A DNA stretch of 46,726 nt from Parasitella parasitica NRRL 2501 (taxonomy: Eukaryota; Fungi; Mucoromycota): positions 41,138 through 87,863 of the forward strand of contig MU619371.1 of the NCBI GenBank assembly GCA_025201805.1, given 5' to 3'. Below are positions 2,006 through 46,726 of this stretch, in pieces. The position numbers and the translations under genes are program-made. The notes under the pieces are model-generated. The model was given only the letters and a program-made list of their open reading frames with translations. It made no database searches and was not told the origin of the DNA. Each line of letters opens with the position of its first letter. Position 1 is the stretch's first letter.

Positions 2006-2573
2006 TTAAGCTTGTTGCTTGAGTAGTTGCTGTTCGTATTCTCTTTGTCTCTCGTATAGCACAAACTTGATTCTGGCCATGGATTTTTGGCACTACAAGA
2101 AAACCAGATTCAGTCGCACGGTCTTGGGGTGATTGATGCATCAAATTACCTTTTTCAAACGGCCTTGATTTGTCCATAACTGTGTTGGTAACTTTAGGCG
2201 GGATGCCTCTTCTCTTTGGGTGGCAAGCACATTACGCTCTTTCAACAAAACGTACCATAATTTGTGGAGGTCCTCGAACGACTTTTGACGAAGCTCTTGA
2301 GCCTTCCAAGCACGGCCTATTATTTTTTTTGTCTTTAATGCATCGTCTTTTTTTTTTCACAAAAAGGCACACTAATTAACCTGTCCAATTTTGTTTCGGC
2401 AACACTTGGTTATTCTCAAAAAATTGGTAAATGCCAGTTGGCTTTGCTGTGCTGGCGGGGGACACTGAGGACGCATCTGCAGATAAAGCGACTCTGGATG
2501 TGTTTATAGAGCGGCTAGCGGTGGTAGCAGCACTCCAGCTGACGGAACGACCGGCTCTTTGCAACAATGACAT
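2006..2573 (-). CDS. MRPL4: Mitochondrial large ribosomal subunit protein uL29m (MRP-L47/MRPL4), 3 coding exons
   Basis: Spliced translation: R/S/A-rich presequence, then GIYQFF...NWT|[37 protein letters not shown]...LKK|[15 protein letters not shown], the uL29m signature. ATG at 2573, TAA at 2006-2008, GT-AG introns. A 5'-UTR intron acceptor (CTGAC...polypyrimidine...TAG) lies just before the ATG. Confidence 0.93.
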
Positions 2574-2739
2574 GTTTCTATACACGAGAAAAAAAAAGTA
2601 AGGTCAGGGTCTGAGGGGTTGACATTTGCGAGGGTTGGCAATATAAAAAANNNNNNNNNNNNNNNNNNNNNNNNNNNNNNNNNNNNNNNNNNNNNNNNNN
2701 NNNNNNNNNNNNNNNNNNNNNNNNNNNNNNNNNNNAAAA

Positions 2740-2985
2740 GAGTCCCATATGCCGTGACGCCTTCCAACGGAACAACAGGCATGCACGGTAAGAACAAATC
2801 GAAAAACTCTCTGATCGACAGGATACATGCCGTGTCTCTATCTATCTCTCTCCTGTAGAGAATATCTCCCATGCTTGCATGATGTGCGGCATGTAACAAT
2901 ATATATAAATGAGAAAAGAAACCCCTACATGGAGATGACATGCATCCGTTTGCTTTAATTTGCGACATCTAATGACTTGGGAAAA
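2740..2985 (-). ncRNA. Candidate structured RNA of unknown family
   Basis: Several nested helices pair fully on the minus strand only through G-U wobbles, e.g. GGAUGCAUGUC (2947-2937) with GGCAUGUAUCC (2831-2821). I did not recognise any family box motif. Confidence 0.4.
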
Positions 2986-3231
2986 TGCAAAAAGCTTTTT
3001 TTTTTTTTAGGAGGGGCCCCAAAGTGACATTTGAAAAGCTTGCATTTTGTCGTTTTATGTAATATATAGAAAGTAGTAGAGTAGAAGGTTAGAGTTATTA
3101 ACTGAAGAAATAAGGGGATCAAAGAAGACGGGAGAAGGGGCGGGGGGGGGAGAGGGACAAGGAAAGATATACATCATTAGTGGGGTTTGAAAAAAAAATA
3201 TTTTGTATATTCTGCCGCTAGAGGCATGCGC

Positions 3232-4548
3232 TTATAAAAGACCAACATCGCGCAGATTGTTCTGAATAATAATATCATTGACAGCAGCCATCACAAACTT
3301 GATCTGCTGTGTATCAGTTGCGCACGTGAAATGAGTGTAGATTTGTTTGGAATCCGACTGATTCAATGACACAAATCGGTTTAGTATGTAATCGCTGGCT
3401 GCTTCGTAGCTCTCGGGACCTAATTTCAATTAAGATTAAATCCTGCAGAAGGGAGCATTGCATCGCCTTACCATCAAAATCTCTAAAGCTTTCATTGAGA
3501 GGATGTTTTGGTAGCTTTTCTCGGAATATGTCAATTTTGTTCAGAAAGAGGATTATCGACGTTTTGATAAACCATCGAGAGTTGCAAATCGAGTCAAACA
3601 AAGTCAACGCTTCCTGCATACGATTCTACGCAGAGAGAGAGAGAGAGAGAGAGAGGATCAATACTAGCCATGATTCACATGCTACATCTGTCGATACGTA
3701 CCACGGTTTCGTCTTCAATGAGCACTTGGTCGTATTCAGAAATGGCTACCAGGAAGATGATGGCTGTCACATTCTCAAAGCAGTGGATCCACTTTTTCCG
3801 CTCTGATCTCTGGCCACCCACATCAAACATGCGATAGGTGAGGTCGCCAATGACAAACGTGGTTTCTGTAATGCCTGTTGTCTTTACTCGCGAGCGGAGT
3901 ACGTCCTGATCTGTCGGCACATAGTTGAGGTCTCCGATGCGGTCGATTGAATCAAAGTAGCTTTTTGAGGCAGGGTTAGACGAGGCGATCAGCACAATAT
4001 GTGGTCCCCACTTACTATTTAGCAGAGTCGTTTAGCTGATATTCGCGGCTTCTATCGAATACGCTCAAGAGATTCTCGTCTTTCCACAGAGATTTCAATG
4101 CCAGAGTCACTTCAGGAGGAAGCGAATCACGTTCTATCTGCGGTGGTAGGTCAAGGATCACTGTAGAATGGTGTTTGTTCTGCGACGTGGCGTACGAGAT
4201 GCCCATGTTCTCCATGGCCTCCAGTATGACTCTCATCGACTGGACTGTGTTGGAAAAGATGATCTCCTTGAAGGCCTCTCTCTCATCGCGGGAATAGCCG
4301 CCGTCGTGAATCAGCTTCATCTGCTTGAGTATAGTCGATTTGCCAGACTCACCAGCGCCTAATTACGTACAAGCGTTAGTCAGCTCCTGAGCATGCTTAC
4401 CAGCACATTTGTAGACGAATAGACACTTACCCAACAGAAGCATCTTGACCTCGTTCCGCATGTTCAGCTTGTCCCGCTTGATTTGGTTGTCGATTTCCTC
4501 GTTGCGAGCTTTGCCATCGTGGACTTCGTTGGATTGACAGCAGCCCAT
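3232..4548 (-). CDS. Heterotrimeric G protein alpha subunit, fungal group I (Gi-like), multi-exon
   Basis: MGCCQS myristoylation/palmitoylation N-terminus; [10 protein letters not shown]-loop, [26 protein letters not shown] and TCATDT motifs; C-terminus NNLRDVGLL. Confidence 0.97.
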
Positions 4549-7062
4549 TGTTCACGGTTATTCAGATCTGAAAAAGAAAAGAAAAAGAAAAAGAAAGAAA
4601 AAAGGCAAAAAGATAAGGGGATCCTTCTGATCAGAAAAGAATCAGGCAAAACAGTATGCAGTCAGAATCCCCTCTTTTTGCTGTTCAAACAATAGTTCAT
4701 TTCTAGCCTATTACAGATAACCTGTTGTCCCCCCCCCCCGACACACACACACACCCCTTCTCTGCCTAATTGCTCCTCCTCCTTACTCCTTGAATTTGTC
4801 TCCTTGTTGTTTATGATCTCTGTCTCTGTTTGCTGATAAAATAGCACACTCTCATCGTACATACTGCAGGCCGCTCGTTTGAGTCGAAAAACTCTAGTGT
4901 CTTTCACTGCCACAGGTGCATATTATCAAGACATCATGCTACCACCCGCTACCGTCAAACTCAATAGACAAGCAACCTGGTACCAATTAGACTAATTAAT
5001 AATATATATCAACTTGGAGGTACAGTGCGACCTTTTGCAAAACCCAGTTTTCTACCCATGCTGCTGCTCTTTTACAATTTGGAATAACAGGGGCTCTCTG
5101 TCTCTCTCTCTCTTTCAAGGAGCGGAACAATAACCGTATAGTTCTCTGGGGCAAACTCCAGTTATTTGACTTGGTCTGTCCCTCTCATTGCTGCAACTCT
5201 GAAGCAAGTATTTTGTGTTCCCAAAACAATAGGAGTAAATGAAATTAAAAAAAATTACCGTCATATAATAGCAAAACGAGGAACTTGGCTTACAGCGAGA
5301 AATATCAAGTTTTTTTTATTCATAGACAATTGCTTATCTCGCATTTGAGAAGGAATTAGATGTTTGCATCAAAGACGGCATACGCAGTTGGTAACAAATA
5401 ATATAACGGCACGGCGCCTTTCTAGACGCATTTGCAGTATTAATTGTAATTGCATACTGCCTTGCCACCGCTAAAAAAGCATACAATACGATTGACACAT
5501 TGTGTTCCATCAAACACTACATGTACGCAAGTGCAAATCAAATGCGATTACGTTAGACTTGTGTCGCCACGTTGTTATCCTGCTCAGTGTCCAACGCTAT
5601 TTGCACAGGAGAATAGCAAATGTTCTCAATACAGTTTTTGAGCAGCAGCAGCACAGTTTCATGCCATCCAGGACATCAATAACGGACTCCTTGATTTACA
5701 TTACTTGATGAGAAAAAAAAGGACCAAGTAACATTTATGGTGGCGGCAACAACATGCAATGGGCTCTGCGTCACAAAACTTGATGATCTACATGGATGCT
5801 TAAACATCTCTTTGGTAATCTCGTGCAAGCCGGATTTTTGTTTTTGTGGATATCGCCGTGCTTTGAGAGAAGGCGCTTTGATCCGGGAATTTTTGGAAAA
5901 ACATGTAGGTTCTGTTAGGTTTATAGGCTAGACGAGAAACTGGTCCTTTTCTGATACATGTGAAAATTATATTTTCAAAGACCCAAAAGGTGCCAGTCTC
6001 TATGGTGATGTAAACGTCTACAAACGACCATGCCAGTGACGAAAAGGCTATTTTCAGCATTAATGTATGCTGATGGGATGATGTTCTCTATAAAAACTAG
6101 CTTTCCACAGGTTCATCTTGATTTCAACTTCTTGGCCAATTTCTTTCAATTTGCAATGCAAAAAGCCAGATTACCGTCAAGATGTAGCGAAATCTCAAGA
6201 TTGTGACATAGCGTATTCCTGCCTGAGTCAATTCAGACGCACTAAATTATTTGTAAATTGGCAACCTTAAAGGGAATAAAGCGTACGTTCTGGGAACCAG
6301 CATACACACATATTAATCATGGATCAGCCATTGAAAAACGCCCAGATCGGTTCGATTTATCCATGAAGCAATGTGTTTGTTGTTTGATGTTTGATGTAAT
6401 TCAAATGTCTACCTTGTTACAATAAATTTGGCCAATTTCTGTACAACACAACACAATATGGAACAACATTTGGTAGCTTGCTTTTTTTTCAAAACGCAGA
6501 ATGTAGCTCAATGAGGGAGAGTCGCAAAAGCAATATCATTTGATATTGAAAATGATCCAAAGACTGACTGATGTCATTTTATTACCGGGAAACAACAATT
6601 GCAAACTCTATCAATCATACTGAATGTACAAGATGATGACCGCTATTTCCTCTTGTTAGCAATGGCCCCCATTAGCTTTGTATGTTGATCAACAAATGCA
6701 CAATAAAAGCAGTAGCATTGCCACTTATGCCGATAATGAAACCTGTACAAATGGTCAAGACAGAGAGGTTCTAATGTGACATCATGCACAACTGCGCATG
6801 CACTTGAAATAATTCTATATATTATACATTGAAAACACACGACCATTAGGCTTGTATACCCTTGACTCGGAGTCAGTTTGTTTAGTTGCAAACAAAAAAT
6901 GCAGACTATATATATCGAACATGGAGTATGTATTTCATGATTTTGTGCGTTACTTGCTCATATTACAAATGACACAAAAAAAAAAAAAAAGCTATGATAT
7001 GCATAACTTTCATTTGGGTCGATTTCACAAAAATTAATATATACAGCCAAAAGGTTTTAATC

Positions 7063-12045: not shown

Positions 12046-13159
12046 GATTCAAACAAGGCTTAGTGTAAGTTGCTGTTGGTTGAAATGAACCAAAGAGGTG
12101 AGAGATGTAGATGTTTGATTNNNNNNNNNNNNNNNNNNNNNNNNNNNNNNNNNNNNNNNNNNNNNNNNNNNNNNNNNNNNNNNNNNNNNNNNNNNNNNNN
12201 NNNNNNNNNNNNNNNNNNNNNNNNNNNNNNNNNNNNNNNNNNNNNNNNNNNNNNNNNNNNNNNNNNNNNNNNNNNNNNNNNNNNNNNNNNNNNNNNNNNN
12301 NNNNNNNNNNNNNNNNNNNNNNNNNNNNNNNNNNNNNNNNNNNNNNNNNNNNNNNNNNNNNNNNNNNNNNNNNNNNNNNNNNNNNNNNNNNNNNNNNNNN
12401 NNNNNNNNNNNNNNNNNNNNNNNNNNNNNNNNNNNNNNNNNNNNNNNNNNNNNNNNNNNNNNNNNNNNNNNNNNNNNNNNNNNNNNNNNNNNNNNNNNNN
12501 NNNNNNNNNNNNNNNNNNNNNNNNNNNNNNNNNNNNNNNNNNNNNNNNNNNNNNNNNNNNNNNNNNNNNNNNNNNNNNNNNNNNNNNNNNNNNNNNNNNN
12601 NNNNNNNNNNNNNNNNNNNNNNNNNNNNNNNNNNNNNNNNNNNNNNNNNNNNNNNNNNNNNNNNNNNNNNNNNNNNNNNNNNNNNNNNNNNNNNNNNNNN
12701 NNNNNNNNNNNNNNNNNNNNNNNNNNNNNNNNNNNNNNNNNNNNNNNNNNNNNNNNNNNNNNNNNNNNNNNNNNNNNNNNNNNNNNNNNNNNNNNNNNNN
12801 NNNNNNNNNNNNNNNNNNNNNNNNNNNNNNNNNNNNNNNNNNNNNNNNNNNNNNNNNNNNNNNNNNNNNNNNNNNNNNNNNNNNNNNNNNNNNNNNNNNN
12901 NNNNNNNNNNNNNNNNNNNNNNNNNNNNNNNNNNNNNNNNNNNNNNNNNNNNNNNNNNNNNNNNNGAGAGTGGACAAGAATGAGCGAGAGAGTCCAAATT
13001 TATCGCTGCATATGTATGTGTACATTGGGCTATTTGATTGTTATTTTGGTTCATTATTTGGCTGGTGTTTTTCCGTATTAAACCTGCTTCTTTGTCGTTC
13101 GTCTTCTTCTTTCTTTTTCCATCATTTACGCTGCTAATACAACACTGCGATACGCCAAA

Positions 13160-15303: not shown

Positions 15304-17425
15304 ATGATGACTGTAGACTTGTTCACTGACGGAGCACACATTCAAGCCAACGACCTGATCAACCAGATGGCCGAACTGGAGGTAAAGCGTTGCAACCGCA
15401 TGCCGTTTGGCACCCATTAATAATGAATTGTTAGGGCGGCTTGCACGCCATGCTGGAAAAGGTCAAGGGCGACTCACAAATGACCAAGGTAAGTTGCCAT
15501 GGCGACGAAGAAAGCGGCGGCGGCGGCGGCGGCGGATCAAAGCACGCTAACAGTGTGTTTGCAGGATATTTCTACCTTTTTAAAGAAAAGGGCATTTTTA
15601 GAAGATAGCTACGGTAGAGACATGGTCAAAGTAGCACAGACAACAGCAGAGGCATTTGACAAAGCGCATCCGAAATCAGGGTAACACAATGAAGCAGGGA
15701 GCGGCATCAGCGTACTCAAAAATGCTGGTTTTGTAGGACGTTTGGTGATGTTTGGATTTCCATGCTGAAAGTGCACGAAAACATTGGAAATCAACGCATC
15801 AAGTTTGCTGCTACCATCTCTGATTCGGCAGAGGACCTGCTGTCTGTCGGCAAAAATATCGAAAAGGACAGAAAAAAGGTAACTACACAATGGCAAGTGC
15901 GATCTGCGCTGCGATGGCTCACCAATGCCTAGATCAAAGATGCAGGCATGCACTATGAGAAGCTGGTAACAGATGCCGATCTGCAGCTGGAGAAGAGCAA
16001 GCAAAAGTTTGAAAACACCAACGAGGAGTGGGGCCGCGCTGTATCGCAGCGAAACCAAGAGCCTACACAGACCACCAAGAAGAATTTGTTCCGATCCAGT
16101 CGCACTCCAGCTCAGGTGAGTCTCTTGCAGGACTGACCCGCGCTCATACTCACGCTCTGTGGCCTCTCCCCACACATAGCTGGATAGAACAGAAAATGAA
16201 TGCAGGAATAAAATGGATGCTGCTGATGCTCAATACAAAGCGCAGCAGAAAAAGACGCTTCAGACACACGCAGAATACTATGAATCTCACCTCCCAAAAG
16301 TGCTCAAGGTAATTGCTTGACAGTAGAATGGACGTGCATGCATGATTTAATGCAGATGCAAATGTAGGATCTAAAAGCAGTAGATGATGAGTGCAACGTG
16401 GCCCTTCGATACCAATTGGCAAACTATGCCTATACATTCGAGCAAGCACTAACTGAAGATGGTTTAGCACTGGATAACGACCAAGGCACAGGATTAAGAG
16501 GCCTCATCACAAAGATTAGATACGATGCCGATTGGGTGGAGTTTGTTCGACTTTGCGCCGAGAGAAGCAGTAGAGTACAAAAGAATGAGCTTGTCCAGCC
16601 AGAGAATACAGTAAGGTATCGGTTTTCTTGCGTGTAAAGCATGTCACTAAGCAATCTCTTTAGCTGCCTGCGAATGCCAATTTCAGCAATAATCGAGTCT
16701 TTGGCGTGTCGTTAGAAAAGCAAGCGGAAATGTCCGAGGATATGGTGCCTGACATTCTAAAGCAATGCGCAACAGTAGTAGAGGAATACGCTCTTAGCTC
16801 AGTGGGGATATACAGGATTCCAGGAACAAATAGTCGTATACAAAAGATCAAACAGAAGTTTGAAAACGGAGATCCTAACCCCATATCTGAGGAGGACTTG
16901 ACTGACATTAATAACGTTACGAGCGTGCTGAAATTGTGGTTTAGAGAATTGCCTGATCCTCTGTTTCCTTCAAGTTTCTACAATCAATTTTTGGATGCAG
17001 TTAGTAAGTTTCCCTCTATTATACCCAAAAAGCCTCTTTAATTTAATACTGTCGTAGAATCGCCCGATGATAGAAGTAGGGTTATTTGCTTACACACTAT
17101 TATCAATGACTTATCAGATGCTCACTACGCTACGCTAAAATATCTAATGTGCCATCTTGACAAGTAAGTACATAAGCCCTGTCATCCTTCAATGTGCATT
17201 GTTTTTAAAATCTGTGTCTTATTCAGGGTCCAATCTCAGCAGCGCCTCAATAAAATGGGTGCTTCAAATCTAGCGACCATCTTTGGCCTGACATTGATGA
17301 GTAGTGAAAGTGGCTCGCAGTCTCAGATGGGTGTTCACGACAATCAGCGTTTTGGAGATTCTCAGTTGCAAGCTCAGGTTGTTCAAACAATATTGGAAAA
17401 CTATTCCGAAATCTTTGAAGAATAA
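15304..17425 (+). CDS. F-BAR (FCH) + RhoGAP protein (Rgd1-like), many short exons
   Basis: N-terminal coiled coil with FLKKRAFLEDSYGR (FCH motif). C-terminal VFGVSL...VPDILKQC...GIYRIPG...DINNVTSVLKLWFRELPDPLF...NKMGASNLATIFG RhoGAP domain. Confidence 0.92.
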
Positions 17426-18073: not shown

Positions 18074-19887
18074 ATCTGATAAGAGTCTTTAAAATTCAAG
18101 GGTCATGAGAATGCGGGGTTGCGCATCCGATTTAGTTTTTGTGCATCGTATGTCATAAATGATCTGATAAGAAACCAAGAAATCAATCTATGATTGAATT
18201 GATGCAAACTCTATATTTCAGGTGCCTTCTGATTTGCACCCAGCTATATTTCGAAATAGCATTCCTTCGAGATAGACCCTTCCACTTCATACGCTTTTCG
18301 TGCTTATTAAAAGTTTAATATCCCAAGAACCAAAGTACAGACGTTAACTTTCGATAGATAATGTACATATTTAACAAATCAGCCTTTATGTTTGGCAAAA
18401 CTTGTTTTTTTCTTTCTTTTTTTTTTGTATGATGTGAACTACAAAGCTATTAAATGGTCTGCTTCTGGAGCCGCTGTATTAAAAGATAACAGAAGATTTA
18501 GGAGTTTTTCAATACAAACAAAGAAATGGGGCTCATACGAATAGATATCCTGAATCTAGTCCTCCAAAACTAAAAGTGAGATACATGCATGTACTTTCTG
18601 CGTGCACAAATTAAAGGATCTGATAAGATTTTTCTTTCTTGCTATTATTGTTTAACCCGAGGTGCCAAGGATTATTTTAGGTCTAAAGATTAAAGATTAT
18701 TTGAGAAAATGAAACTTTATTTATCCAGTGTTTTATATGATTATAAGCGATACTTTTTCATTTATCAGATCTTACGCAATCAGATAATTATGCGGGGGTT
18801 CTTGAAAAAGATCTGATAAAGAACTTGACTAAAAAAAAAAAAACGAATTAATTAAAAATAAAAAAAAGATAATCTAATAATTATTCTCGTCAGAATCCTG
18901 GGAATATAATTTTGTTTTCGAACATTTTGGTTTATACTAGACTCTTTACTTTTTACCGCTTTATAGCCGTGTTTTTTTTGAATGGTAACATTTGTCTGAT
19001 TATGTCCTGTATCTGCCAGATTATAATTGTTTATCATTTACTATCTAATCGTACACACATTTGCTAAAGGTTTTCTATGTCTTTTTTCAATCCTAATGTT
19101 ACATGTGGTAGCACTAGATTACGATGCGTTCTTGTTTCGGGAAAAAAAATTATCAGATCTTTTGATGGTTGGTTAATTGCGACATCCCCCCATACTTTGA
19201 GACGAATAAAGTTAAAGACCATTGGCGTGTGAAATCCTTATCTTTTGATGGTAAAGGCAAGATGCAGAAGCCTCTAGACACAAACAAAGGCAAGTTTCAT
19301 AAGAAAGGGAAAAAGATGGACAGAAATGAAAACAATGAGAATGTAAAATAAACATTTCTTATCAATTTGGTTTATCAGATCTTGAATAACTTTTTACTTT
19401 TTTTTTTTTTTTTTTTTTTNNNNNNNNNNNNNNNNNNNNNNNNNNNNNNNNNNNNNNNNNNNNNNNNNNAATAATAAAAAAAAAGGCTCTCACATACTCA
19501 ACCCCCCCCCCCAAAAGCTTTTATCAGATCTAAGAAGATTAGGCAATCTATTTTGGATTGTCGGGTATATTCGTTAGATTTCAAAACTGGTTGGACATAC
19601 TGCACTCTTTAATGACTCATGTATAACTGTATATTTTTATCCTCCAATTCGACGACGGAAAAGATCTGATAAAGATTTCATGCGAACCTGGGTCACTTTC
19701 AAACGACATACCTCGTCAAACTCCTTGTCAGATCTAAAAAGCACATGCCAAGTAAAAAAAAAAAAAAATCACCTTATAAATAAAAACAAGTTCAGCCTAT
19801 TTTTTGAGTTACTAGTCGAAGGATTTAAAATTTAGTAAACATAATGGTGCGATGTAAAGCAGGGGGCGGAGCTCTAGAATCAGATAA
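18074..19887. promoter_or_regulatory. Dense cluster of ATCWGATAA sites (SreA/Fep1-type iron-responsive GATA motif) upstream of the PPR gene
   Basis: Perfect matches at 18074, 18162, 18618, 18762(-), 18779, 18811, 19150(-), 19372(-), 19521(-), 19664 and 19879, in both orientations with unrelated flanks. Near-matches at about 19725 and 19937. Confidence 0.8.
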
Positions 19888-19959
19888 TCAAACAATTCGT
19901 TTGAACCTTAATTTGTTGTTAGGGTCACCTGCTAGGATCAGATATATAAACTATTTTTG

Positions 19960-20003
19960 ATTGGCCGTATCTCACAAACATCATTTCCATATTCTTATAA
20001 ATA
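19960..20003 (+). promoter_or_regulatory. Core promoter of the PPR gene: reverse CCAAT box and TATA box
   Basis: ATTGG at 19960-19964 and TATAAATA at 19996-20003, then a pyrimidine-rich tract about 85 bp before the ATG. Confidence 0.55.
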
Positions 20004-20088
20004 GGCAAGACAAATTTTCCCTCTTCCTTGTTTTTCTCTTTTAATTACATCCCTTAAAATAATATCAATTGTACTATAAATCATTACT

Positions 20089-23000
20089 ATGCAAATCATG
20101 ACCACCACAACTACATCGAAAGCTGCTGCCGCTGCTCTTCATAACAATAACAAATACACATCTCGTCGCAACAACAAGTACAAACAGCAATCACGTCGTC
20201 GCTCTTCTACTACGTCTACCAATAGTACCTCTTCTCAATCTCTGACTCTTCCTGCCCAGCAAAATTGGGAACACCAAAAGCATGACCTGCTCACAAAAGC
20301 CACATCTGCACAATCTCATCATACTCCAGACGAGGAGAAGGAAGAGCCCATCTTCAATATTGTATATAGTGCGCCTGTAGTAGATATGATAACTCCTCCT
20401 CCTTCCCCAAAGTCTTCTCCTCTGGCACCTTCGGCATCTCAAGCGTTTGAAGCCAACGACCGTATTCTCAATGTCAGACGTCTTGGCCAACTCAAGCTTC
20501 TCATGTCTGAGTACGCCGCTCTTCAGAAGGAAGGCCTTTTATTTACTGACCACACCTTCAACCTCATCTTTGATGCTTATGCAAGTCTTCGCCGTGATGG
20601 CACCCCTTTGACTCCCATGTTGAAAAGTAAGTTTCGCTGTGTGCAGCCCTTTTATCAGTTTAATCAGATAATTAATTTTCTCCTACCCCCCACCCCCTTT
20701 TCCTCCAATTCAGTGTATGAAGAAATGGTCCGCTCTGAGATCCAACCCAGCAGTTCCACATACACTCTTCTCATCCGAACCTTGTGTAAGCGTGATGTTG
20801 AAGTACAAAAGGTTATTGCCATGCTGAAGCGCCAAAATGCCCGCTCTTCCAGCCATCAAACCAAGTCCAACAACATGGCCGAACTGGAATCCGAAGAGAA
20901 TCTGCAAAAGGCCTTGGCCATGTTTGATGCTGCTGTCTCTGAAAGTCTGGTACAGTTCTTTGACGCCGAGCTTTACAATCAGATTTTACGTGTATTGTCG
21001 CACTATGGTAACACCGAGCAATCCCTTTATGTGTATCAGCAGCTGGAGACCCACTCCATGCCCACATCTGCTACCTTTGCTGCGCTCATCAACCTGTTTG
21101 GCCGTGTCGGTGATCTGTCTTCGGCCTTGGTGTACTTTGAAAAGTATGCTCAGCTCAAAGACAGCGTTGGTCCCCACGATGCCTCGTACGTGTACAATGC
21201 CTTGGTCGATGCCCATCTTAAATGCCACCATCTGGAAGGTGCGCTCAAGATTGTCCAGCAAGATATGATGTCTGCCGATGTCAAGATTTCTACAATCCCC
21301 TACAACTCAATCATCCGCTATTACTGCATCGAGAATCAGCTGGACCAGGCCAAAGAGCTCATTCAGTCCATGAAGGACGCCTATCCTCAACCGGACGCCA
21401 GCAGCTATGGCCCGGTCCTTTCCTCATACTGCCAATTGGGCCTTTACAGCGAAGCCACTGAAATGTATCAAGCTCTTATCCAGACCGACATCTCCAAATC
21501 GTATGGCAATCTGGCCAACTATGCGTTGCTGTGTCTCAAGGATTCTGGTAGCGGCAACAAGGTAATTGAAGTTGTGAACGATATGCACCGTGCTGGCCTT
21601 GAGCCTGACTCTGTCTTGGCTGAGCGTATCGTTACTCATTTTGCTAAGCTTGGCCAAGTCAATGATGCTATTACTGCACTTGGTTGCATCCTTGACGCTA
21701 TGAAGGCTCGTTCCCTTGCCAAGGGCATTGCGCAAGTCAAAAATGCTTCTATTCAAGTCGCTACTGCTGCCCAGGGTTGTTTCGAACAGACTTTGCAAGT
21801 GGCTCGTATGATGGTTCCTCATTGCCCCCATGGTTTGCCTCTGCAGTTGGCCAAGACACTGATTGAAGACTTTGAATTTGACGCTAACCACGACGTAGTA
21901 AACCAGTCTGACTACGCCATCTTGTTTGATGCCTCGATTACGATTGCATCTGATGCTTCTCGCAGCAAGTCCTCTCTGTCTCCCATCAACATTTTCGTGT
22001 TCTGTCTTCAATCCGAACTGACTAGCAAAGGCTTCAAGGTGTGCCCCAGTGTCAAGTCTCGCGTAGCTGCCTACTTTGCTCGTGTGGGTGACAAGAAGGC
22101 CGCTCAAAAGTGGGATGCTCTCTTCAACAAGGTCGAAGGCTTTGCTGCTATTGTTGCCAGCCCTGTTACTACTGCTGCAGTATCGGAATCTGAGGAGGCG
22201 TCTGCTGCTGTCATGAAGGCTGCTATCCATGGGCAACTCGACGAATCTCTTGAAATCTTGCGTACGCGCATCGCCGATGCTAGCCTTGTACCTACTGCTG
22301 AACCTCTCCGTGATGCTATCGCCTTTGTCGGTAAGCAAGGCCATCTTGAAACTGCTGTTGCCATGTACCGTCTCGCTATCAAGTGTTTCAAAAAGTCTTC
22401 TCTGGACTCACAGCGTATGGAACGCGCTATTTACATGATGACAAACAGCATTCTTATCGGGTATGCGCAACAGGGCGACATGGTCAATGCTAAAAAGTAC
22501 TATGAACAAATCAAGTTGATGGGCCGCTTCCCTGATGGCAATGGCTATGCTAGCTTGCTGCTTGGCAGTGCTAAATGCGCTACTGATGAAGCCACTGATG
22601 CCCTGACCATCTACGACGAAGCCAAGCGCCGTGATGTCAAGCCCACCACTTTCTTTTACAACGTTGTAATCTCCAAGCTGGCCAAGGCACGTAAATTGGA
22701 TGCTGCTATGAAACTCTTTGAAGAAATGCAAAGCTTCAAGGTCATGCCCAACTCCATCACTTATGGCGCCATCATTTCTGCATGTGTTCGCGCTGGTTCC
22801 GAACCCTTGGCTCGCAGATTGTTTGCTGAAATGCTGGCTTCGCCCTCTTTCCAGCCTCGCGTTGGCCCGTTCAACAATATGATTCAGTTCTATGTTCGTC
22901 AGCAGCCCGACCGTGAGCGTGCTCTCGAGTACTTTGCCGAATTGCGCCGTCGCCATATCAAGCCTTCTGCTCACACATACAAGCTTTTGATGGAAGCCTA

Positions 23001-23577
23001 TTCTCTGATTGCTCCTTATGACATGCCTACTGCCCACCGTATGTTGAGTGATATGGAACGCTGCGACCATCTTCGTCCTCAAGCTACTCATTATGCGACT
23101 TTAATTTACTCTTACGGCACTCTCCAGCGTGATGTCAGGAGCGCTGATCGAGTCTTCCAGGATATGGACGCCAAGAACGTAGCCAAGGATGAGGTTGTTT
23201 ACCAAGCTATGCTCGACACTCTTGTGAGCAATGACCAGTTGGCCCGTGCTGAAAAGCTTTATGCCAAGATGCAAGGCGCTATTCAAAAGAGCTCTTCTCC
23301 CTACATCGAAAATGTCTTTATCCGTGGCTATGGTCAAAAGGGTCTATTGGACAAGGCCAAGGCTATGTTTGATGCTATGACTGATGACAAGATTACAAGC
23401 AATCAATCCTCCTCTTCTGCTGCTGTTATTCGCGAGCCCAGTACATATGAAGCTATGGTTCGTGCCTATGTTGAAAACAAGAGAATGACTGAAGCCAAAG
23501 AGATCTTTGAATTGATGGTGCAACGTGAGTTCCCTGAAAAGGTCACTGCCTTGGTAGCTGAATTGATTTCTGCTTAA
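20089..23577 (+). CDS. Large pentatricopeptide-repeat (PPR) protein, probably mitochondrial and Ppr5-like; one 87-nt intron at 20627-20713
   Basis: Many 35-aa PPR units (e.g. PTTFFYNVVISKLAKARKLDAAMKLFEEMQSFKVMPNSITYGAIISACVR; PSAHTYKLLMEAY). The first ~60 aa are R/K/S/T-rich and free of acidic residues. Removing GTAAGT...CAG restores MLKMYEEM. Confidence 0.93.
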   Translation: MQIMTTTTTSKAAAAALHNNNKYTSRRNNKYKQQSRRRSSTTSTNSTSSQSLTLPAQQNWEHQKHDLLTKATSAQSHHTPDEEKEEPIFNIVYSAPVVDMITPPPSPKSSPLAPSASQAFEANDRILNVRRLGQLKLLMSEYAALQKEGLLFTDHTFNLIFDAYASLRRDGTPLTPMLKSKFRCVQPFYQFNQIINFLLPPTPFSSNSVYEEMVRSEIQPSSSTYTLLIRTLCKRDVEVQKVIAMLKRQNARSSSHQTKSNNMAELESEENLQKALAMFDAAVSESLVQFFDAELYNQILRVLSHYGNTEQSLYVYQQLETHSMPTSATFAALINLFGRVGDLSSALVYFEKYAQLKDSVGPHDASYVYNALVDAHLKCHHLEGALKIVQQDMMSADVKISTIPYNSIIRYYCIENQLDQAKELIQSMKDAYPQPDASSYGPVLSSYCQLGLYSEATEMYQALIQTDISKSYGNLANYALLCLKDSGSGNKVIEVVNDMHRAGLEPDSVLAERIVTHFAKLGQVNDAITALGCILDAMKARSLAKGIAQVKNASIQVATAAQGCFEQTLQVARMMVPHCPHGLPLQLAKTLIEDFEFDANHDVVNQSDYAILFDASITIASDASRSKSSLSPINIFVFCLQSELTSKGFKVCPSVKSRVAAYFARVGDKKAAQKWDALFNKVEGFAAIVASPVTTAAVSESEEASAAVMKAAIHGQLDESLEILRTRIADASLVPTAEPLRDAIAFVGKQGHLETAVAMYRLAIKCFKKSSLDSQRMERAIYMMTNSILIGYAQQGDMVNAKKYYEQIKLMGRFPDGNGYASLLLGSAKCATDEATDALTIYDEAKRRDVKPTTFFYNVVISKLAKARKLDAAMKLFEEMQSFKVMPNSITYGAIISACVRAGSEPLARRLFAEMLASPSFQPRVGPFNNMIQFYVRQQPDRERALEYFAELRRRHIKPSAHTYKLLMEAYSLIAPYDMPTAHRMLSDMERCDHLRPQATHYATLIYSYGTLQRDVRSADRVFQDMDAKNVAKDEVVYQAMLDTLVSNDQLARAEKLYAKMQGAIQKSSSPYIENVFIRGYGQKGLLDKAKAMFDAMTDDKITSNQSSSSAAVIREPSTYEAMVRAYVENKRMTEAKEIFELMVQREFPEKVTALVAELISA

Positions 23578-24560: not shown

Positions 24561-25755
24561 ATGGCTACTGACGATGACAATAGTATAGACTTGGCCTTCC
24601 AAGAGGAATCGGGCATCAGTCTACTCAAACAAGATGGTACAGAAGAACTGAAACGTGCACACCAGCAAACAGAAGAAGAAGCGCAGAAAGCTAAACTTTG
24701 TCAAATATGCCAGGAAAAAGATTGGATCTACACCTGTCCGTCATGTTTAACACATTCATGCTCGTTGAAATGCGTCAAGCAGCACAAACAGCGAGATTCT
24801 TGTTCAGGGCAGCGGGACAAGACAGCCTATGTACCATTGCAGAAATACACTGAATCCCACATGATGAGCGGTACGCTTGAAACTGTCCCATACAGCTGCA
24901 GCAATGTACTGACTCTTTTCAATACAGATTACACCTATTTGGAAGATGTGTCTAGACAATCTGATAATATTACTAGAAGCAGAATGGATACGAATAAAGA
25001 CCTCAAATTAAAATCAGCCGAGAATCGAGCTAAAGCGTTTAGTAAAATAGCAAATCAGCACGGAATACATTACTCTTCGCTGCCGATTGGCATGAGCAGA
25101 AACAAATTGAACCAAAGCAACTATAGCAAAAAGTAGGCAAAATCGACGATTTGACGAAAATGAATACCGACTGATTTTATCTAGCCTGAAGCAGATATTC
25201 TGGTCTCTCGAGGTAAATTTCTGCTGCGACGGCAAGAAGGAACGATACTTGGAGCATTCGTAAGTCTCTACAGGCCCTAGCAAACCGCCCACAAAGCGTA
25301 CTGATAACGCAATTAGATTCCCCCAGATTAAGCCGTTTGCTGCATTTTTTGAGAATCTATTGCTGGTAGAAAATCCACAGGGCAAAGGAGCGTACAGCAC
25401 CATCCGCCACCAAGTAAAGTTATTCGTTGATGCGGGAATTGGCCAATTCAATATTGCATTGAAGAAAGAAAAATCGCCTCGAGGACACTTTGTCGATGTA
25501 TCGCATCATATTGATCTGCTGTTCAAAGACGTCTTGAAGGGTGAACAAATCATTGAATACCCAATCTTTTATGTTTGGCTGAAATCTCAGGAACGACCAT
25601 CAGAGATTTTGGTGCTGGAAAAAAAAAGGCAGCTGATAACGACCATAAAGACGGAGAATGAAAGCGGTGTTGTAGAGCGCGCATCCGTGGACAACAAAGA
25701 CGGCGCTGCATCCGAAGAGGCTGCAGAGACAAACGATATGCCTGTGCCAGTATGA
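24561..25755 (+). CDS. BCD1: Box C/D snoRNA biogenesis protein Bcd1/ZNHIT6 (zf-HIT)
   Basis: CQIC...YTCPSCLTHSCSLKCVKQHKQRDSCSGQRDKT zf-HIT, then MMSDYTYLED, LPIGMSRNKLNQS, IFWSLE and LKGEQIIEYPIFYV motifs across exons. Confidence 0.92.
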
Positions 25756-37112: not shown

Positions 37113-40100
37113 AGCAGAAAATGTATTCATAATGAAAATGGGTAAATAGAACAAAATGCGAGTTAGGTAAGGCTTTAAAAGTCTTACCCATCGTTATTTG
37201 CAAGTCACTTGTGCAGCGAAACGCAGTAAAATCCTTTCTTTATTTTGATAGTAGATTGAATGTGCAATAAGCTGTTATTTTACATCTTTATTGAAACAGT
37301 GTCTACGAGGGATACGAAAGAAAACTAGTGCAGAGATGATATATTTTATAATATTACATGTGTATCTGTTGTAATTAAAGAACTCGTCAAGATTTTCTGA
37401 TATATTATGAATGTTTATTGCACCATTTTCGTTGCGGGTTCTTTTTTCTTCTAGTATCTTGATTGCTTTATTTTGGTTACTTTCGTTGTAGTTTCCACTA
37501 CGCAGAAATATCTCCATTCGCTTAATCGCTTTTTGACGGCGTTGGTAGAATTTTGAAAGACTTGATGTTCCTTTCCAATTTTTAACTCTATGTATTCTAT
37601 CAAGTTTACACACCGGATGGTAACCGGGAAGACCATCAAAGCAAATACGCCAAAGAGCAGGTAAAGTTTCGGCTTTTTTGAAAGCTTGAATAGTGATATC
37701 AAGTCCTTCGGTTCCTGCAGCTGCTGAAGATGTTGGCTGTTGTGAGGCAGGTACTGGCTGGGATGTCGTAGGGAGAGAGAAAGAAAATTGACTTGACAAC
37801 GTGGAATTATTTAATATNNNNNNNNNNNNNNNNNNNNNNNNNNNNNNNNNNNNNNNNNNNNNNNNNNNNNNNNNNNNNNNNNNNNNNNNNNNNNNNNNNN
37901 NNNNNNNNNNNNNNNNNNNNNNNNNNNNNNNNNNNNNNNNNNNNNNNNNNNNNNNNNNNNNNNNNNNNNNNNNNNNNNNNNNNNNNNNNNNNNNNNNNNN
38001 NNNNNNNNNNNNNNNNNNNNNNNNNNNNNNNNNNNNNNNNNNNNNNNNNNNNNNNNNNNNNNNNNNNNNNNNNNNNNNNNNNNNNNNNNNNNNNNNNNNN
38101 NNNNNNNNNNNNNNNNNNNNNNNNNNNNNNNNNNNNNNNNNNNNNNNNNNNNNNNNNNNNNNNNNNNNNNNNNNNNNNNNNNNNNNNNNNNNNNNNNNNN
38201 NNNNNNNNNNNNNNNNNNNNNNNNNNNNNNNNNNNNNAAAAATTTCAGCTGGAAAAGTTTGGAAGCCTTGACATAGAGTATTAAGAGATTGAACTTGGGC
38301 AGACAAAGTAGATATTTGATTCTTCAAATCTCTGAGGTGGTTGTCGACTTGTGGTATGGCTCTTTGAAGTAACAAATCACCAGGTTCTTCAATATTCTTC
38401 AATATTCTCGAGAGCACGATTTAAATTGCTAAAATTTTTAAAAAAAATGCAAAAAATAAGGTTTCTCTCTGTCGTTTGAGGCGCTAATTTCTACATACCG
38501 TTCAAATTGTAAATACAATTCATCTTGAAACAATGTATCATACCAAAGTGCATGGTCAGGGTAAGTCTTCTTCATAATTACTGAGTCCTGAAGGAATACA
38601 ATACGTAATTGGAGCAGAAGACGCAAAAATCCATCAGTAGCAGTTGAAGTTTCCAATACTTCCTCTTTGTTAATCCTTTCTAACCAATAATCAACTCGAG
38701 GAAATACCTTCTTTAGCAGCTCTTCTGGTGGTGTTACTGTAGAATGGATCAAATAAAACTGTCCAGCATCTCTTGTAAAAGCTGCTAATGTTCTCAATGC
38801 TTCTCTTGGCAAATGAGTTAGATAGTTCGACGTCAATGCTGAATTGTTCCAGCGACCTAGGCGCTGGATGGCTGCTTCACTTGTACCAAACATCTCCGCC
38901 ATTCTTGAACCAGAGCCCCTCATTGCATGAGTTTTTGCTTTGCTATTAAGACCAACAGCTTTGAATGCTTCTTTTGTACAGTTAAGATGGTGATCGTAGG
39001 AGATGGAGGTCTTGGGGTCGTTTCTTGATCTAGTCGATTTGAAACCAAACCAATCGCGAATCTCATTGAATTCGGGAAAAGGTTCACCTGCAATATGCCA
39101 ACGATAGAATAGATAAAAAGAGAGTAGCATTTGAGGACAAATGTTTACATTCTTGTTACGTAAAGAAGCAGTAAACTCCAAACGGCCTTCTTGATTTTTT
39201 TTGCCTTGTTTTAATACCATAATGAGCGCATAACATGGGCTGATCCCCTCATTTTCTAATAGCATACATTGCAAGTCTGGAAACTCCATCATGCGCAAAC
39301 TTTCCCCACGAAGTAACCCATAATGCTGCAACAAAAAAGTAACACCATTTCGTAACCCCTCTTAGGTATTTTTACGGAAGTAATGCTCTACAAGTTTCTC
39401 CATTTCAGCAGTAGTAGAGTACCCATCAGCTACAGTACCCACTCCACGATCGACATAGTTTTCCCGTTTGTGCTTTTGTTCTTCATACTTGAGGCTTTGT
39501 AAAAGAGCATCAACAAGCTTACCATGATGGTGAGGGTGATTGCTGTGTGGATCATTCACTGATTGCTCGTTATGGAGATCAACAACAGCAGATATGTACA
39601 TCTTGACAGTAGAGAGACCGACACGCTTAGCATTTGTAGAAGAAGTTGAGGCAGCACGCTCCAGCAATTTACTCTTCTTAATTGATTGTCATCGAGAACT
39701 TCACTAGGTACTTCGCCAGTTTGAAGAAGATCGGAGTCGGTTGGCAATGGATGATTTTCCTCTGTGGAAGAAGTAGAGATCGGATTACTGCTTTCATTTG
39801 ATGTTTGTCGTCGTTTAGTTTCTCTCCTATTTCAAATTAGTAATTTGGTCACTAAAGACATTTTCTACTCCAATTAGCTTACTTTTTATATTCCCTATTG
39901 ACAACCTCAATTTTATGTTTGATTATTAAAAAAAAAGGGCATGAGTGAGTATTATAATTTCAAACCATACCTGAGTATGCAAAAAAAATGTAGCTTTTTA
40001 TCATCAGGGATTTCGTTTAATGGACCCGGTGGACAAAACTTTTTACACCATTCAAGAAATTCTTCCTTTCTATTCTTATAAGACTTTGTTGTGTTTTTTG

Positions 40101-40514: not shown

Positions 40515-41620
40515 TTATGTCAAAAGTCTGATAAAATTAATCTGCCAAATTAATCGCGATCGATAAACCATATCCTCAGAAATAATTGCCCGCGGTAATA
40601 GCTGTCCATATTCTTGTTGCATTACTAATTGTTCAGTCCATCCCTTATACTTTAGTTTCTCGGAACCATATACAGGATAATAATATGAGATAAAATCAGT
40701 CAGCTTCAACGACTGTGATCTGCCATAATTATAGACAGAAGATCATGACAATGTACTTCAATTGAAGATTGAAGATTGTCCAATGATGTGATGTGATACG
40801 CTTGTGTAAATTGGAGAATAAAGTCTCTGTTTCAAATCAAGAAGGTTATTCCTGTAAGTAACACAGATCTGAGCACCAGGATAAAGGTTAAGGCTCTGTC
40901 AGATCAAAGACGTGTAGCCCTTGCTGTATAACCTCATATCGTACCCTGTCAAGTGAATTGTCACTGTGAATTAGTCTTGTCAATTAGTAATCTAAATAAG
41001 TCACCATAAATTTATGTAGTTGTAAAAAGTATAAATAGCAGATGCAATTTCGATCTTAAATAAAGTATCTTTAGTTTTCGTATCTCGTTAACCTTTGGTT
41101 TTTTTATTATCTTTTTGATCCAACAGACTGTACTTGAGGTCCACCTTTTTTAGCTTCATATCTTTGTACAACGTTTTTCTTGTATACAGTATGTCCTTCG
41201 ATTCCTTCTCAACTTTTTTATCCTTAATATCGCTTCTAATTCCACGATGCTCATCATGCGGAGGATTTATTGGTACATAAATCACCTCTCTCCTCTCTCG
41301 ATGCTTGGTGGGTATCCATACCAAGTAAATCATAAGCGGCTTCAACTGAACCAACGATGCGACTTTTCATATGTACCCCAAGACGTCTCTTTTCATGTAT
41401 TCGTTCGAAGCTAAACTGGACATCATCATCTACTTTTGTGAGATACTTGGCCAAATAATGCAATGCAGCTGGTCCCCGATTCACTTGAATATCCAGATTT
41501 GCTTCAAACAACGCCAGCAAAAAAAGAATTTTATGGATTTGCATTGCCATCCAATAGGCCACATTTATACATCATCGCGCTGTCAGGAACTGTGAGTAAC
41601 ATTGATTGCTTGGCGTGAGC
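40515..41620 (-). mobile_element. Helitron Rep/helicase remnant
   Basis: ANLDIQVNRGPAALHYLAKYLTK (HUH Y2 motif YxxKY) followed by SRIVGSVEAAYDLLG, typical of Helitron Rep; broken by frameshifts. Confidence 0.78.
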
Positions 41621-42676: not shown

Positions 42677-43985
42677 ATGCCACATGCAAAATATGAAAGT
42701 TGTTTGAATGATTTTACAAAGAGCTATGTTTTTTTACAAAAGCTAAAAAGTCATTGGGCAATTGCACATAATTTGGTTGCCAAACATTCATACCGCACAA
42801 AACCCAGAAAGCACGTACTGAATTGTGCAATATGCAATAAAGGAGGAATTGACAGAAGTATCATGCAGAGTCATTACTTGGATCGTCATGTATACGACAA
42901 GAAAAATATTGGCAATGCTGGCAACGATGCCATTGATCGTTTACAGTTGGCAAACATCGACCAACTTGCGTCTTTAAACATAAAGTCTTTGGGCATACAA
43001 CCTCTTTTGTAAGTAGAGCGAGTAAAGAGAGAGATAATAGTAGTCTCTTATAAATGTAGGGCTTTCTCGAGCATTTTTATGCATGAGCAAACGGAGGAAC
43101 CAGCACAAAAGATGTTCTCAACGGTGTTTGTTGAGTCAGTGAGACGCGTTTTGAAAGTATTTTTTATAAATCAAGTATACAAAATTGTATATTAAAAAAA
43201 TTGGCTTAGGAATTGGCAGGAGGGGCTGGAAAGCTGACTTGTTTCAAAAACATGATTGCGTTGCTTTCTGAGAATGGTGAGCAAAAGATTGAAGATTCGC
43301 TGCTGGTCTGTCTTTCAGATTTGTATGTATTATGGTTTGATGATGAAATGTCTTTATTAATTTTGAGGTGAACAGTATTATGCTTTCCAATAATTACAGA
43401 AATCAAATAACTACGGAACCAGAAATTTGCTCGCAATATGTGGATCCAATAATGAAGAAGTTGTTTGCGGGTTTTCACGAGGGATTTTATGCTGCAGGGT
43501 AAATTGTCGTAAATCAATTGGTGAATGTGCATGCGGTTAAAATATGTTGCAGAGAAAACAGCAAAATATCTGATAATATGGAGAGGCCAGATTATATGAT
43601 TGAAAAATTTGATCTCAACAATGAGCATCTGTTATTTTCCTGCTTTGGTGAGATAAAGCCAGCTTCTAAACCATCCCATTATTATACCATGGATATTTAT
43701 AGGCTGGCTTTGTTCTCAAAGAGGGAACTGATCCAAAACAGTTTGAATCGTGTAACGTCCTTTTTTTGCATCGAAAATATGATACGCTTCTTCTGTTTGT
43801 CCTCCAGTGGAGACGTTTTCAGTTTCGTAGAAGTTGCTGAAGTTGTGCTACCCAAAAAGGCATACAATGCAAATTTGTTGGTGCCGCGCATGGAAAAACT
43901 GGCGATTGTTTGCCATATGCATAGTTGTGTTCAAGTTGTTGAGAATGCATATCTATGCAAAGAATCTGGAAATCTTACCTTTTGA
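42677..43985 (+). pseudogene. Fragmented gene with a C-terminal PD-(D/E)xK nuclease-like domain, probably repeat- or transposon-associated
   Basis: RPDY...CFGEIKP...DIYRLALFSK pattern in ORF 43518-43985. Upstream parts are interrupted by stops or introns, so an intact model could not be built. Confidence 0.5.
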
Positions 43986-46726
43986 TTTCTTATAAAAATA
44001 AAATCTCTGAGTTGCAATGCTCGAAGTCTGTTTATAAAATCTGGATTCGAAATATTGGGAGAAAAGCCGTCCCTATGTGCAACCAAAGTTATCAATTTTC
44101 AATTGCCTTTTGAACACATTTTGCAATTTTGTCTTTTTAATCAACATGAAAATATTATTTGTTGGCATCAATCCTTCTTCAACAACTTCAGACCACTATG
44201 GCCTCGCCAATGTTCTCATGAGAATATATATGTGCATGAAGGGGAACAGTTTTTAGAGCCAAAAAAAGTGCTTATCGAGCTAGGTTAAGGCGATAAATGT
44301 GCTCATGCGAGAACAAAAATTGAAACATCTTAAATGATCACATTTTTATGCTTAAATGAGCACATAAATTACTAGTTTCATAGGCTTAAAATTACGCTCA
44401 AAAGGCTTGAAAAAATGTGCTCATGTAGCGAAAATGTGCCCGTACACTCAAAAAAATGTGCTCAAAAAAGTAAAATTTGCGTATAAAAATAATGTAGCTG
44501 TAGCTTTTGTTTATTTCTCAATTTTTGTAGTATGGACCAGTAATTTATTATTGCTTTCATTTCATATCGTTACATACAATATTGTCTTGATTATGTAGCC
44601 TTTGGTTCACACAGGCAATGATGGAAAACAGTGCAAGGTTAGCTATTACCCGATTTGAAATTGAAGCAGCCGCTGAGGTATTTGCTATAGACAAGAAAAG
44701 TGCATCAGTAAAATAAATTTTGTTGGCGACAATAACAAATAACCACCTACATTAATTGTGAAAAGAGATGATACACTACAACATCATATAAAATACTCGA
44801 AAAAAGAAGCAAGGTTTAGCTTCATAACTTCTAGAATCCAGGGCAAAAATGAACAGCAAACCTCTCATATTATCGTATATGTTCAGATACTGGGCACAAA
44901 ATTATACCTGTAGCGTGCCTAAATATATAATATAGAAGAGATCTAGTTTTAGTTTATATTAATTAAGCAAAAGAAGCAAGCCAAAAAGTATTCAATACTA
45001 CCTTGACATTGACACCCAAACGACGTAATATAAAAAAGTAATTTAAACATAGTATTATATTTAGCTATTGCCTATATATAGCACTAAAAGAAGTCAGTCA
45101 TTTAGTAGCTACAAACAATTTAATGCACATAGCAATACCATAATCTCATATGAAAGATTGAACTGAGTAGAGCCTCTATTGTGTTATTGACAAAAGAATT
45201 AAAAGTTTGTTAGAATAAACTCAAATACATACCATGATGATATCAATACACAAAATATGTTGTGTATCATTTCTTTATTCCAAGCTATACTGCAAGCTGT
45301 TCCTTGATAAAATAGAAGCTACAATTTCTTATAATGATGAAACTACAGATACGTGAAGATGTTAGTATTCTGTATAGTGTACTTATATTTGGCACAAAAT
45401 GTGCTAATATTGTATGTTTTTTAAGTTAAAATACCAGTTTATAAAGTTGTAAAGTTAGTGAAAACAAAAGAAAAAGACCAAGGAGAAGCTAACAAAGAAG
45501 CTAAAATATGCATTCGGTCATCACAATATGCAATGTTTGCGCTAAGCATGCAGTAAAAAGCCAATAGAAAAGCACCGCTACAAGGTCGTCTCAACATTTG
45601 AAAGCAAGGCATGTACAAACAAAAATATACTTTACTCAAGTGTATTGCTACTGGTGCTAGCATTATTATTACCAGCGGCTTTTTTTTCATCATCTTCAAC
45701 AACACTTTGGTTAACAGTAGGTACTTCTTCGTCACTTTTTGCGCTCGAATGAACATTAGTATGATCGTGCGAGCATAAATAAACTTTTTTTACTCAAAAC
45801 AGATGCGATCTTTGCAATATCTCAACAAATATTTGGTAGCAAATGTTACTACAAGCACAAAAAAAATCGAAATGTCTCAGGAATTATATTATATAATTAA
45901 AAAATGAGCCATCTCAACTTTTTTTATAAATGTACATGCAATGGAATGGTATAACTAAAAGCAAGTAACTAAAANNNNNNNNNNNNNNNNNNNNNNNNNN
46001 NNNNNNNNNNNNNNNNNNNNNNNNNNNNNNNNNNNNNNNNNNNNNNNNNNNNNNNNNNNNNNNNNNNNNNNNNNNNNNNNNNNNNNNNNNNNNNNNNNNN
46101 NNNNNNNNNNNNNNNNNNNNNNNNNNNNNNNNNNNNNNNNNNNNNNNNNNNNNNNNNNNNNNNNNNNNNNNNNNNNNNNNNNNNNNNNNNNNNNNNNNNN
46201 NNNNNNNNNNNNNNNNNNNNNNNNNNNNNNNNNNNNNNNNNNNNNNNNNNNNNNNNNNNNNNNNNNNNNNNNNNNNNNNNNNNNNNNNNNNNNNNNNNNN
46301 NNNNNNNNNNNNNNNNNNNNNNNNNNNNNNNNNNNNNNNNNNNNNNNNNNNNNNNNNNNNNNNNNNNNNNNNNNNNNNNNNNNNNNNNNNNNNNNNNNNN
46401 NNNNNNNNNNNNNNNNNNNNNNNNNNNNNNNNNNNNNNNNNNNNNNNNNNNNNNNNNNNNNNNNNNNNNNNNNNNNNNNNNNNNNNNNNNNNNNNNNNNN
46501 NNNNNNNNNNNNNNTCCTATAAATACTAAGATGTTTTTCTCTAGATAAAACCTCAGTATACTTTTATAATAAAGAACCCCAAACTTGATTATAATTGTAA
46601 TTTCATATCGCTTTTATTTTTTTTTTTTTTTTTATTTCGTAAATCTTTCAAATTTACTGCAGTACATTTGGGCCAAAATTATTTATGGTCTCACAAGCAC
46701 ATTAATGCTCCCATGACCCTAAAAAT

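Follow-up and report, generated by a model that had tools for sequence, protein, structure and literature searches.

In Mucorales, the ability to acquire iron is central to virulence, and the iron regulators of these fungi have barely been studied. Elsewhere among fungi, the motif ATCWGATAA is that of the SreA regulon in Aspergillus fumigatus and fits in vivo sites of Urbs1 and Fep1 (PMC2610380). It has also been noted in the promoter of the rhizoferrin synthetase gene (rfs) of Mucor lusitanicus (PMC9226013). Among pentatricopeptide repeat (PPR) proteins, Ppr5, with 1261 amino acids (aa) the longest of Schizosaccharomyces pombe, is a negative and general regulator of mitochondrial translation (PMC3185421). 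Here we describe a locus of Parasitella parasitica NRRL 2501 at which these two subjects may meet. It lies in a stretch of 46,726 nucleotides (nt) of contig MU619371.1 (assembly GCA_025201805.1, forward-strand positions 41,138 to 87,863), hereafter the window, and consists of a gene for a PPR protein with a dense array of ATCWGATAA sites upstream. A first-pass annotation had proposed that SreA/Fep1-type GATA factors act on this array as an iron-sparing switch on mitochondrial translation. Our literature search found no description of the array, nor any link of Ppr5 or LRPPRC-type proteins to iron regulation in fungi. We find that the sites form a real, conserved cis-regulatory array that is probably linked to iron.

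A pattern search of the window returned 15 perfect ATCWGATAA sites against 1.5 expected from dinucleotide-preserving shuffles, and none of 100 shuffles matched that total. Eleven of the sites form the array, in both orientations and at the place given by the first-pass annotation. Its rough estimate of about 0.1 sites expected by chance also agrees with a first-order Markov model of the 2663-bp spacer between the genes (0.12 expected, 11 seen). It had noticed a single further match, at 43568, whereas the window holds four outside the array, at 17111, 20663, 24959 and 43568. The array and the PPR gene are laid out as follows.

18074..19887, both strands (7 plus, 4 minus): array of 11 perfect ATCWGATAA sites, from -2015 to -210 relative to the ATG
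18074+, 18162+, 18618+, 18762-, 18779+, 18811+, 19150-, 19372-, 19521-, 19664+, 19879+: starts of the 11 sites, with strand
20089..20626, plus strand: exon 1 of the PPR gene
20627..20713, plus strand: intron of 87 nt, in frame, GT..AG, seen in a spliced contig
20663: twelfth site, in the first intron of the PPR gene, also kept in Mucor circinelloides
20714..23577, plus strand: exon 2 of the PPR gene, with PPR repeats throughout

The background was drawn from the remainder of the window, eight loci of GATA genes, the downstream halves of the orthologue loci, and a count over the whole genome. The 32.8-Mb genome contains 1463 copies of ATCWGATAA (0.045 per kb; reversed control, 606), so that the array, at 6.1 sites per kb, is about 136-fold denser than the genome average. 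The match at 24959 is one ATCTGATAA inside a zf-HIT/BCD1-like gene (24561-25136) downstream of the PPR gene.

The sites resemble each other beyond the nine defining letters. They share an extended core of about 13 nt, AAA(A/G)GATCTGATAA, and among the pooled sites of all arrays, 72 of 75 have G or A at position -1. The Histoplasma Sre1 site is reportedly (G/A)ATC(T/A)GATA, which fits this preference. A repeat finder aligned only 15-21 nt motif cores among the sites and found their flanks to be unrelated, as the first-pass annotation had noted; the sites are therefore not copies of a longer repeat. With no shared flanks and no comparable cluster elsewhere in the genome, a dispersed repeat or a mobile-element remnant is ruled out.

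The genome-wide distribution of the extended motif singles out the same locus. The genome contains 71 copies of the 11-mer AGATCTGATAA, against 17 for the reversed control; 6 of these 71 copies fall in the array, and the complete genome list has at most two in any other 2-kb stretch. Nine of the 199 genomic copies of the 10-mer GATCTGATAA are in the array as well. Placements of GATCTGATAA and of BGATCTGATAA cover the first 100 places, and the cluster ranking uses the complete 11-mer list. By that ranking, no cluster of the extended motif in the 32.8-Mb genome is larger than the array; the shared FET3-FTR1 promoter holds three ATCWGATAA sites.

A check suggested by the first-pass annotation, motif enrichment upstream of orthologues, gave a strongly positive result, with 6-12 sites in seven species. 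Sites were counted within 2.66 kb of the ATG unless a shorter intergenic length is given, and each expectation is between 0.05 and 0.17.

Mucor circinelloides orthologue: 10 sites upstream
Mucor hiemalis orthologue: 11 sites upstream
Thamnidium orthologue: 10 sites upstream
Rhizopus delemar orthologue: 12 sites upstream
Rhizopus microsporus orthologue: 9 sites upstream
Phycomyces orthologue: 7 sites upstream (9 within 5 kb)
Umbelopsis orthologue: 6 sites in 1.1 kb upstream
Lichtheimia hyalospora orthologue: 3 sites in 0.87 kb upstream
Syncephalastrum orthologue: 2 sites upstream

As a control, the genes and downstream DNA of seven orthologue loci contain 6 sites in 58.8 kb. The upstream neighbours of the orthologues vary (RhoGAP, lipase, pectinesterase, a 3-beta-HSD-like gene, or no gene within 5 kb), the neighbour's 3' end points at the array in several species, and most loci have an unusually long upstream stretch without genes (2.7-5 kb). 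Since the array accompanies the PPR gene at 10 further loci of Mucoromycotina, next to different neighbours, the PPR gene is its partner, in line with the target named by the first-pass annotation. No ATCWGATAA was found in the 1.8-kb upstream region of the homologue of Schizosaccharomyces cryophilus or in the 384 bp of upstream intergenic DNA of the homologue of Panus rudis. By these sequence comparisons, the array belongs to Mucoromycotina, and there to two of the three paralogues described below.

Conservation is concentrated on the sites themselves. A MAFFT alignment of 2.7 kb of upstream DNA from four Mucoraceae (Parasitella, M. circinelloides, M. hiemalis and Thamnidium) shows pairwise identities of 42-57%. 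The alignment has eight invariant blocks of at least 8 nt; four of the eight are sites and a fifth is a variant with one mismatch. The conserved elements are the following.

19150..19162, minus strand: site unchanged in Parasitella, M. circinelloides, M. hiemalis and Thamnidium
19226..19235: conserved block CGTGTGAAAT, then a simple GATA site (CTTATC)
19520..19531, minus strand: site conserved in all four aligned species
19613..19619, plus strand: TGACTCA, AP-1/bZIP-like, conserved
19661..19672, plus strand: site conserved in all four aligned species
19866-19873: conserved non-GATA element GCGGAGCT
19875..19889, plus strand: proximal site TAGAATCAGATAATC at -210; Mucor and Thamnidium have it between -202 and -239
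19936..19946, plus strand: conserved site GATCAGATATA, a variant with one mismatch to the motif
19960..19964, minus strand: reverse CCAAT box within TGATTGG (19958-19964) at -129, candidate site of the CCAAT-binding complex
19996..20001, plus strand: TATAAA at -93, conserved proximal promoter

R. delemar has a related proximal site at -205, and CACCTG is also kept in the proximal promoter. Mucor, Rhizopus and Thamnidium keep the reverse CCAAT box between -123 and -161, and this box could link the PPR gene to the HapX/CCAAT complex as well.

We next consider the product of the gene. Protein searches were run with exon 2 and with the stop-free open reading frame (ORF) that reads through the in-frame intron. 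The first 60 residues contain no acidic residue, 9 R/K and 21 S/T; this N-terminus looks like a presequence, and the protein is presumably mitochondrial. Pfam returned PPR families only (PPR_2 at 2e-67, PPR and PPR_long) and no other domain. A PDB search likewise found PPR proteins only, with LRPPRC at 5e-9, and neither PDB nor a protein atlas yielded a more specific name than generic PPR matches. An exhaustive HMMER search reached Dikarya through the C-terminal ~420 aa. Among the ten representatives named there, the sole Schizosaccharomyces protein is the 1253-aa 'PPR repeat protein' P0155 of S. cryophilus (1.6e-72), which is 35% identical to the window protein over the C-terminal ~390 aa. 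In the reverse search of the Parasitella genome, the S. cryophilus protein matched the window gene and two other loci, on contigs C208 and C81, at ~1e-70, and the next match was at 6e-12. Because only three loci match this protein strongly, and because of its size likeness to Ppr5, the three Parasitella genes are probably co-orthologues of Ppr5. One source also names a Choanephora paralogue 'PPR protein 5'. The resemblance to Ppr5 claimed by the first-pass annotation is thus upheld as a reciprocal best match with the 1253-aa protein, while the step from that protein to Ppr5 itself goes by size and domain content.

The paralogues differ in their upstream DNA. The second (C81; 49% identical) has four sites just upstream (L004:4593-5581), and its M. 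circinelloides counterpart has five (L016:3786-4726). Some of these sites are identical between Parasitella and M. circinelloides including their flanks, for example AATCAATCTGATAAGATGGA. The third paralogue (C208 ~2452-5835, minus strand; open frame of 1139 aa) has one distal site upstream (L032:458-3001), so that the family is split into array-bearing and array-free copies.

We compared the motif with the factors and genes of iron regulation in the same genome. Two encoded factors carry two GATA fingers around a CX5CX8CX2C linker (L018 on C62 and L019 on C42), and this linker marks both, by sequence, as members of the SreA/Fep1 class. The only full FTR1 gene adjoins an oppositely oriented multicopper oxidase gene (FET3), and it is their shared promoter that has the three sites. 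The motif is further found upstream of the genes for heme oxygenase (4 sites), a four-HMA Cu-ATPase of the CCC2 type (2 sites) and rhizoferrin synthetase (1 site). Both the presence of two SreA-class factors and the motif at these genes are consistent with the SreA/Fep1-type reading given by the first-pass annotation. The SreA-like gene L018 (C62:66000-70000) itself has a site ~950 bp upstream of its frame and three inside the frame; the other seven loci of GATA genes, 31 kb in all, have none. Downstream of FTR1, a 2-kb interval bounded by two gene ends contains another five sites (L001:7230-8337, C127). They surround a 111-aa minus-strand ORF without a Pfam match, which may be an unannotated iron-regulated gene.

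Taken together, it is very likely that the array is functional and dedicated to the PPR gene. We infer who binds it, the sign of regulation and the role of the protein by analogy with how Fep1, SreA and Urbs1 are known to act. With sufficient iron, the sensor would carry an iron-sulfur cofactor on its Cys-rich linker, and in this loaded form it would occupy the ~12 sites and lower transcription of the PPR gene. When iron is scarce, the sensor would leave the DNA, and the conserved CCAAT, bZIP-like and TATA elements would drive expression. The PPR product would then alter the translation or stability of mitochondrial mRNAs; if it acts like Ppr5, fewer heme- and iron-dependent respiratory subunits would be made. 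In such a circuit, the amount of a protein that regulates the use of mitochondrial mRNAs would follow from cytosolic iron status. We consider it likely that SreA-class factors read the array, and the chances that the array represses the PPR gene in iron-replete cells appear evenly balanced. Only tentatively do we suggest a role for the protein as a negative regulator that serves iron sparing. As the best explanation overall we propose, with moderate confidence, that a cluster of two-finger GATA sites, most likely read by SreA/Fep1-class sensors, sets the level of the PPR gene.

A different GATA factor might instead read a functional PPR-gene array in response to a signal other than iron, such as nitrogen, light, development or oxygen; we regard this as unlikely. 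The candidates are three linker-less two-finger factors, AreA-like and white-collar proteins, and the array could even be an activating enhancer. Several observations weigh against the iron-sensor model, and some of them suit this alternative. The genome encodes 43 GATA fingers in all; five genes carry two such fingers, and three of the five lack the Cys-rich linker. The palindromic ATCWGATA is also bound by the vertebrate two-finger factor GATA-1 (cited in PMC2610380), and in vitro DNA affinity purification sequencing (DAP-seq) in R. microsporus found all GATA factors at similar regions (PMC12638772); the SreA homologues of that species, GATA Znf4 and Znf8, are covered by those data. Sites cluster upstream of a velvet-domain gene (6 sites; L006:3021-4819, C158), a phytochelatin synthase gene (6 sites; L003:4313-5455, C82) and a Ccdc124 gene (3 sites); the first two are unexpected for an iron regulon. 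The FET3-FTR1 sites lack the -1 G typical of the PPR arrays, and the two ferric reductase upstream regions checked have no site. The PPR mRNA is abundant in a single RNA run, unlike what tight repression in ordinary medium would give. For the role of the protein, only the C-terminal third shows strong homology to the presumed Ppr5 orthologue, and the S. cryophilus protein is taken as that orthologue by its size and PPR-only domain content alone.

An oxygen signal would be in keeping with data from Lichtheimia corymbifera, where the 1167-aa PPR gene LCOR_01248.1 is 2.2-fold up in hypoxia (105 to 235 reads per kilobase per million) and FTR1 and FET3 are down ~4-fold (PMC4133162 Table S7); the neighbours of LCOR_01248.1 are unlike those at the L. 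hyalospora orthologue locus, so that its orthology is unverified and the gene was not used as evidence. What speaks for SreA-class factors rather than another GATA protein is that the same motif stands at FET3-FTR1, heme oxygenase, rfs and the Cu-ATPase gene, that descriptions of the iron-sensing subfamily give the complete 9-mer with R at -1, and that SreA-class factors are present in two copies. The first-pass interpretation therefore holds for a non-repeat array of SreA/Fep1 type, for the PPR gene as target and for the presence of suitable factors. Its iron-sparing circuit is still a proposal, because the PPR mRNA is abundant and the motif also clusters at non-iron genes (velvet, Ccdc124).

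The array could also control a transcript of its own. The expression view comes from one public run, whose culture condition is not stated and which we take to be RNA because its contigs are spliced. A PPR mRNA contig of 3498 nt starts at 20074 and skips 20627-20713 (GT..AG), and a contig of the RhoGAP gene skips 17164-17226. Contig depth, which is a poor measure of expression, is about ten times greater for the PPR mRNA (1432) than for RhoGAP (153), and the PPR gene is well expressed in that run. The RhoGAP gene lies upstream on the plus strand, ends at 17425 and points into the spacer, as the first-pass annotation had it. No spacer ORF is longer than 61 aa and the RNA contigs there are weak, which rules out a hidden protein-coding gene. 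Two further features fall within the array.

18896..19322, minus strand: weak spliced transcript, contig depth 7-14, no convincing ORF
19420..19469: assembly gap of 50 N, non-coding, between a T-run and an A-run

The joint of the transcript (19130>19196, intron 19131-19195) reads CT..AC, that is GT..AG on the minus strand. The transcript may be promoter-upstream noise or a regulated non-coding RNA. We think it improbable that the array serves a non-coding RNA from 18896-19322, which would modulate the PPR promoter and leave the PPR gene an indirect target. The low-depth spliced contigs, with their minus-strand joint, and the long gene-free region upstream of most orthologues would fit such an RNA, but its depth of 7-14 compares with 1432 for the PPR mRNA and its region is poorly conserved outside the binding site. 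Moreover, the sites reach far past the transcript, to -210 from the ATG, and in Umbelopsis and R. microsporus the array is packed into 1.1 kb. The gap is harmless to the finding, since it is non-coding and the sites on either side of it (19372 and 19521) are matched, in unchanged order and at similar spacing, by orthologous sites in the contiguous, aligned sequence of M. circinelloides; it could hide one more site at most. Further gaps in the window lie at 12121-12965 (the largest, 845 N), 37818-38237 and 45975-46514, with smaller runs elsewhere.

That the sites are chance matches, or remnants of a repeat or mobile element without a regulatory role, is practically excluded: the region is AT-rich and an AT-rich 9-mer with 1463 genome copies is not extremely rare, but this reading is refuted by the excess over the 0.12 sites expected, by the unrelated flanks, by site-by-site conservation across genera in otherwise unconserved DNA, and by the recurrence of arrays at orthologues across two orders.

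If SreA-like sensors do read the array, the most heavily targeted promoter of their regulon has been identified, and iron sensing would be linked to mitochondrial genome expression. Speculatively, Mucoromycotina may have wired a cytosolic iron sensor directly to dedicated paralogues of a general mitochondrial-translation regulator, with the array-free third paralogue constitutive. On this speculative reading, SreA would have as its strongest target in the genome, rather than an uptake gene, a switch that throttles or reprograms mitochondrial genome expression under iron shortage, and the nuclear-to-mitochondrial iron-sparing route would be one not known to have been described in any fungus. 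The system offers built-in controls: arrays at two of three paralogues, conservation across two orders, and no site upstream of the Dikarya homologues checked (S. cryophilus and Panus rudis).

Compared with the SreA, Fep1, Urbs1 and SRE regulons, the Parasitella locus has the same motif with R at -1 and sites in both orientations, the genome encodes cognate factors with a Cys-rich linker, and the motif is found at Parasitella genes of reductive iron uptake, siderophore synthesis and heme oxygenase. It differs in that the target is a predicted mitochondrial PPR protein, not an iron-acquisition gene, and in that the Parasitella case is known from sequence. The ~12 sites over 2 kb also exceed those at any other Parasitella locus checked (three at FET3-FTR1) and set the array apart from SreA-type promoters. 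Like Schizosaccharomyces Ppr5, the protein is large and PPR-only; its N-terminus looks like a presequence, and it is the reciprocal best match to the S. cryophilus 1253-aa protein (35% over the C-terminal 390 aa). Unlike there, the N-terminal two thirds can barely be aligned, Parasitella has three paralogues, and the S. cryophilus homologue has no upstream ATCWGATAA. The proposed outcome, less respiratory-chain synthesis when iron is short, is that of HapX/Php4-CCAAT iron sparing, and the PPR promoter has the conserved CCAAT at -129. However, the known arm is a CCAAT-bound repressor limited to nuclear genes, which for that reason cannot reach mitochondrial genome expression, whereas the route proposed for Parasitella would be a derepressed SreA target that acts on mitochondrially encoded mRNAs. 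Overall, the motif and the class of regulator are known from these systems; the novelty lies in the target, in how large the array is and in its being conserved across two orders.

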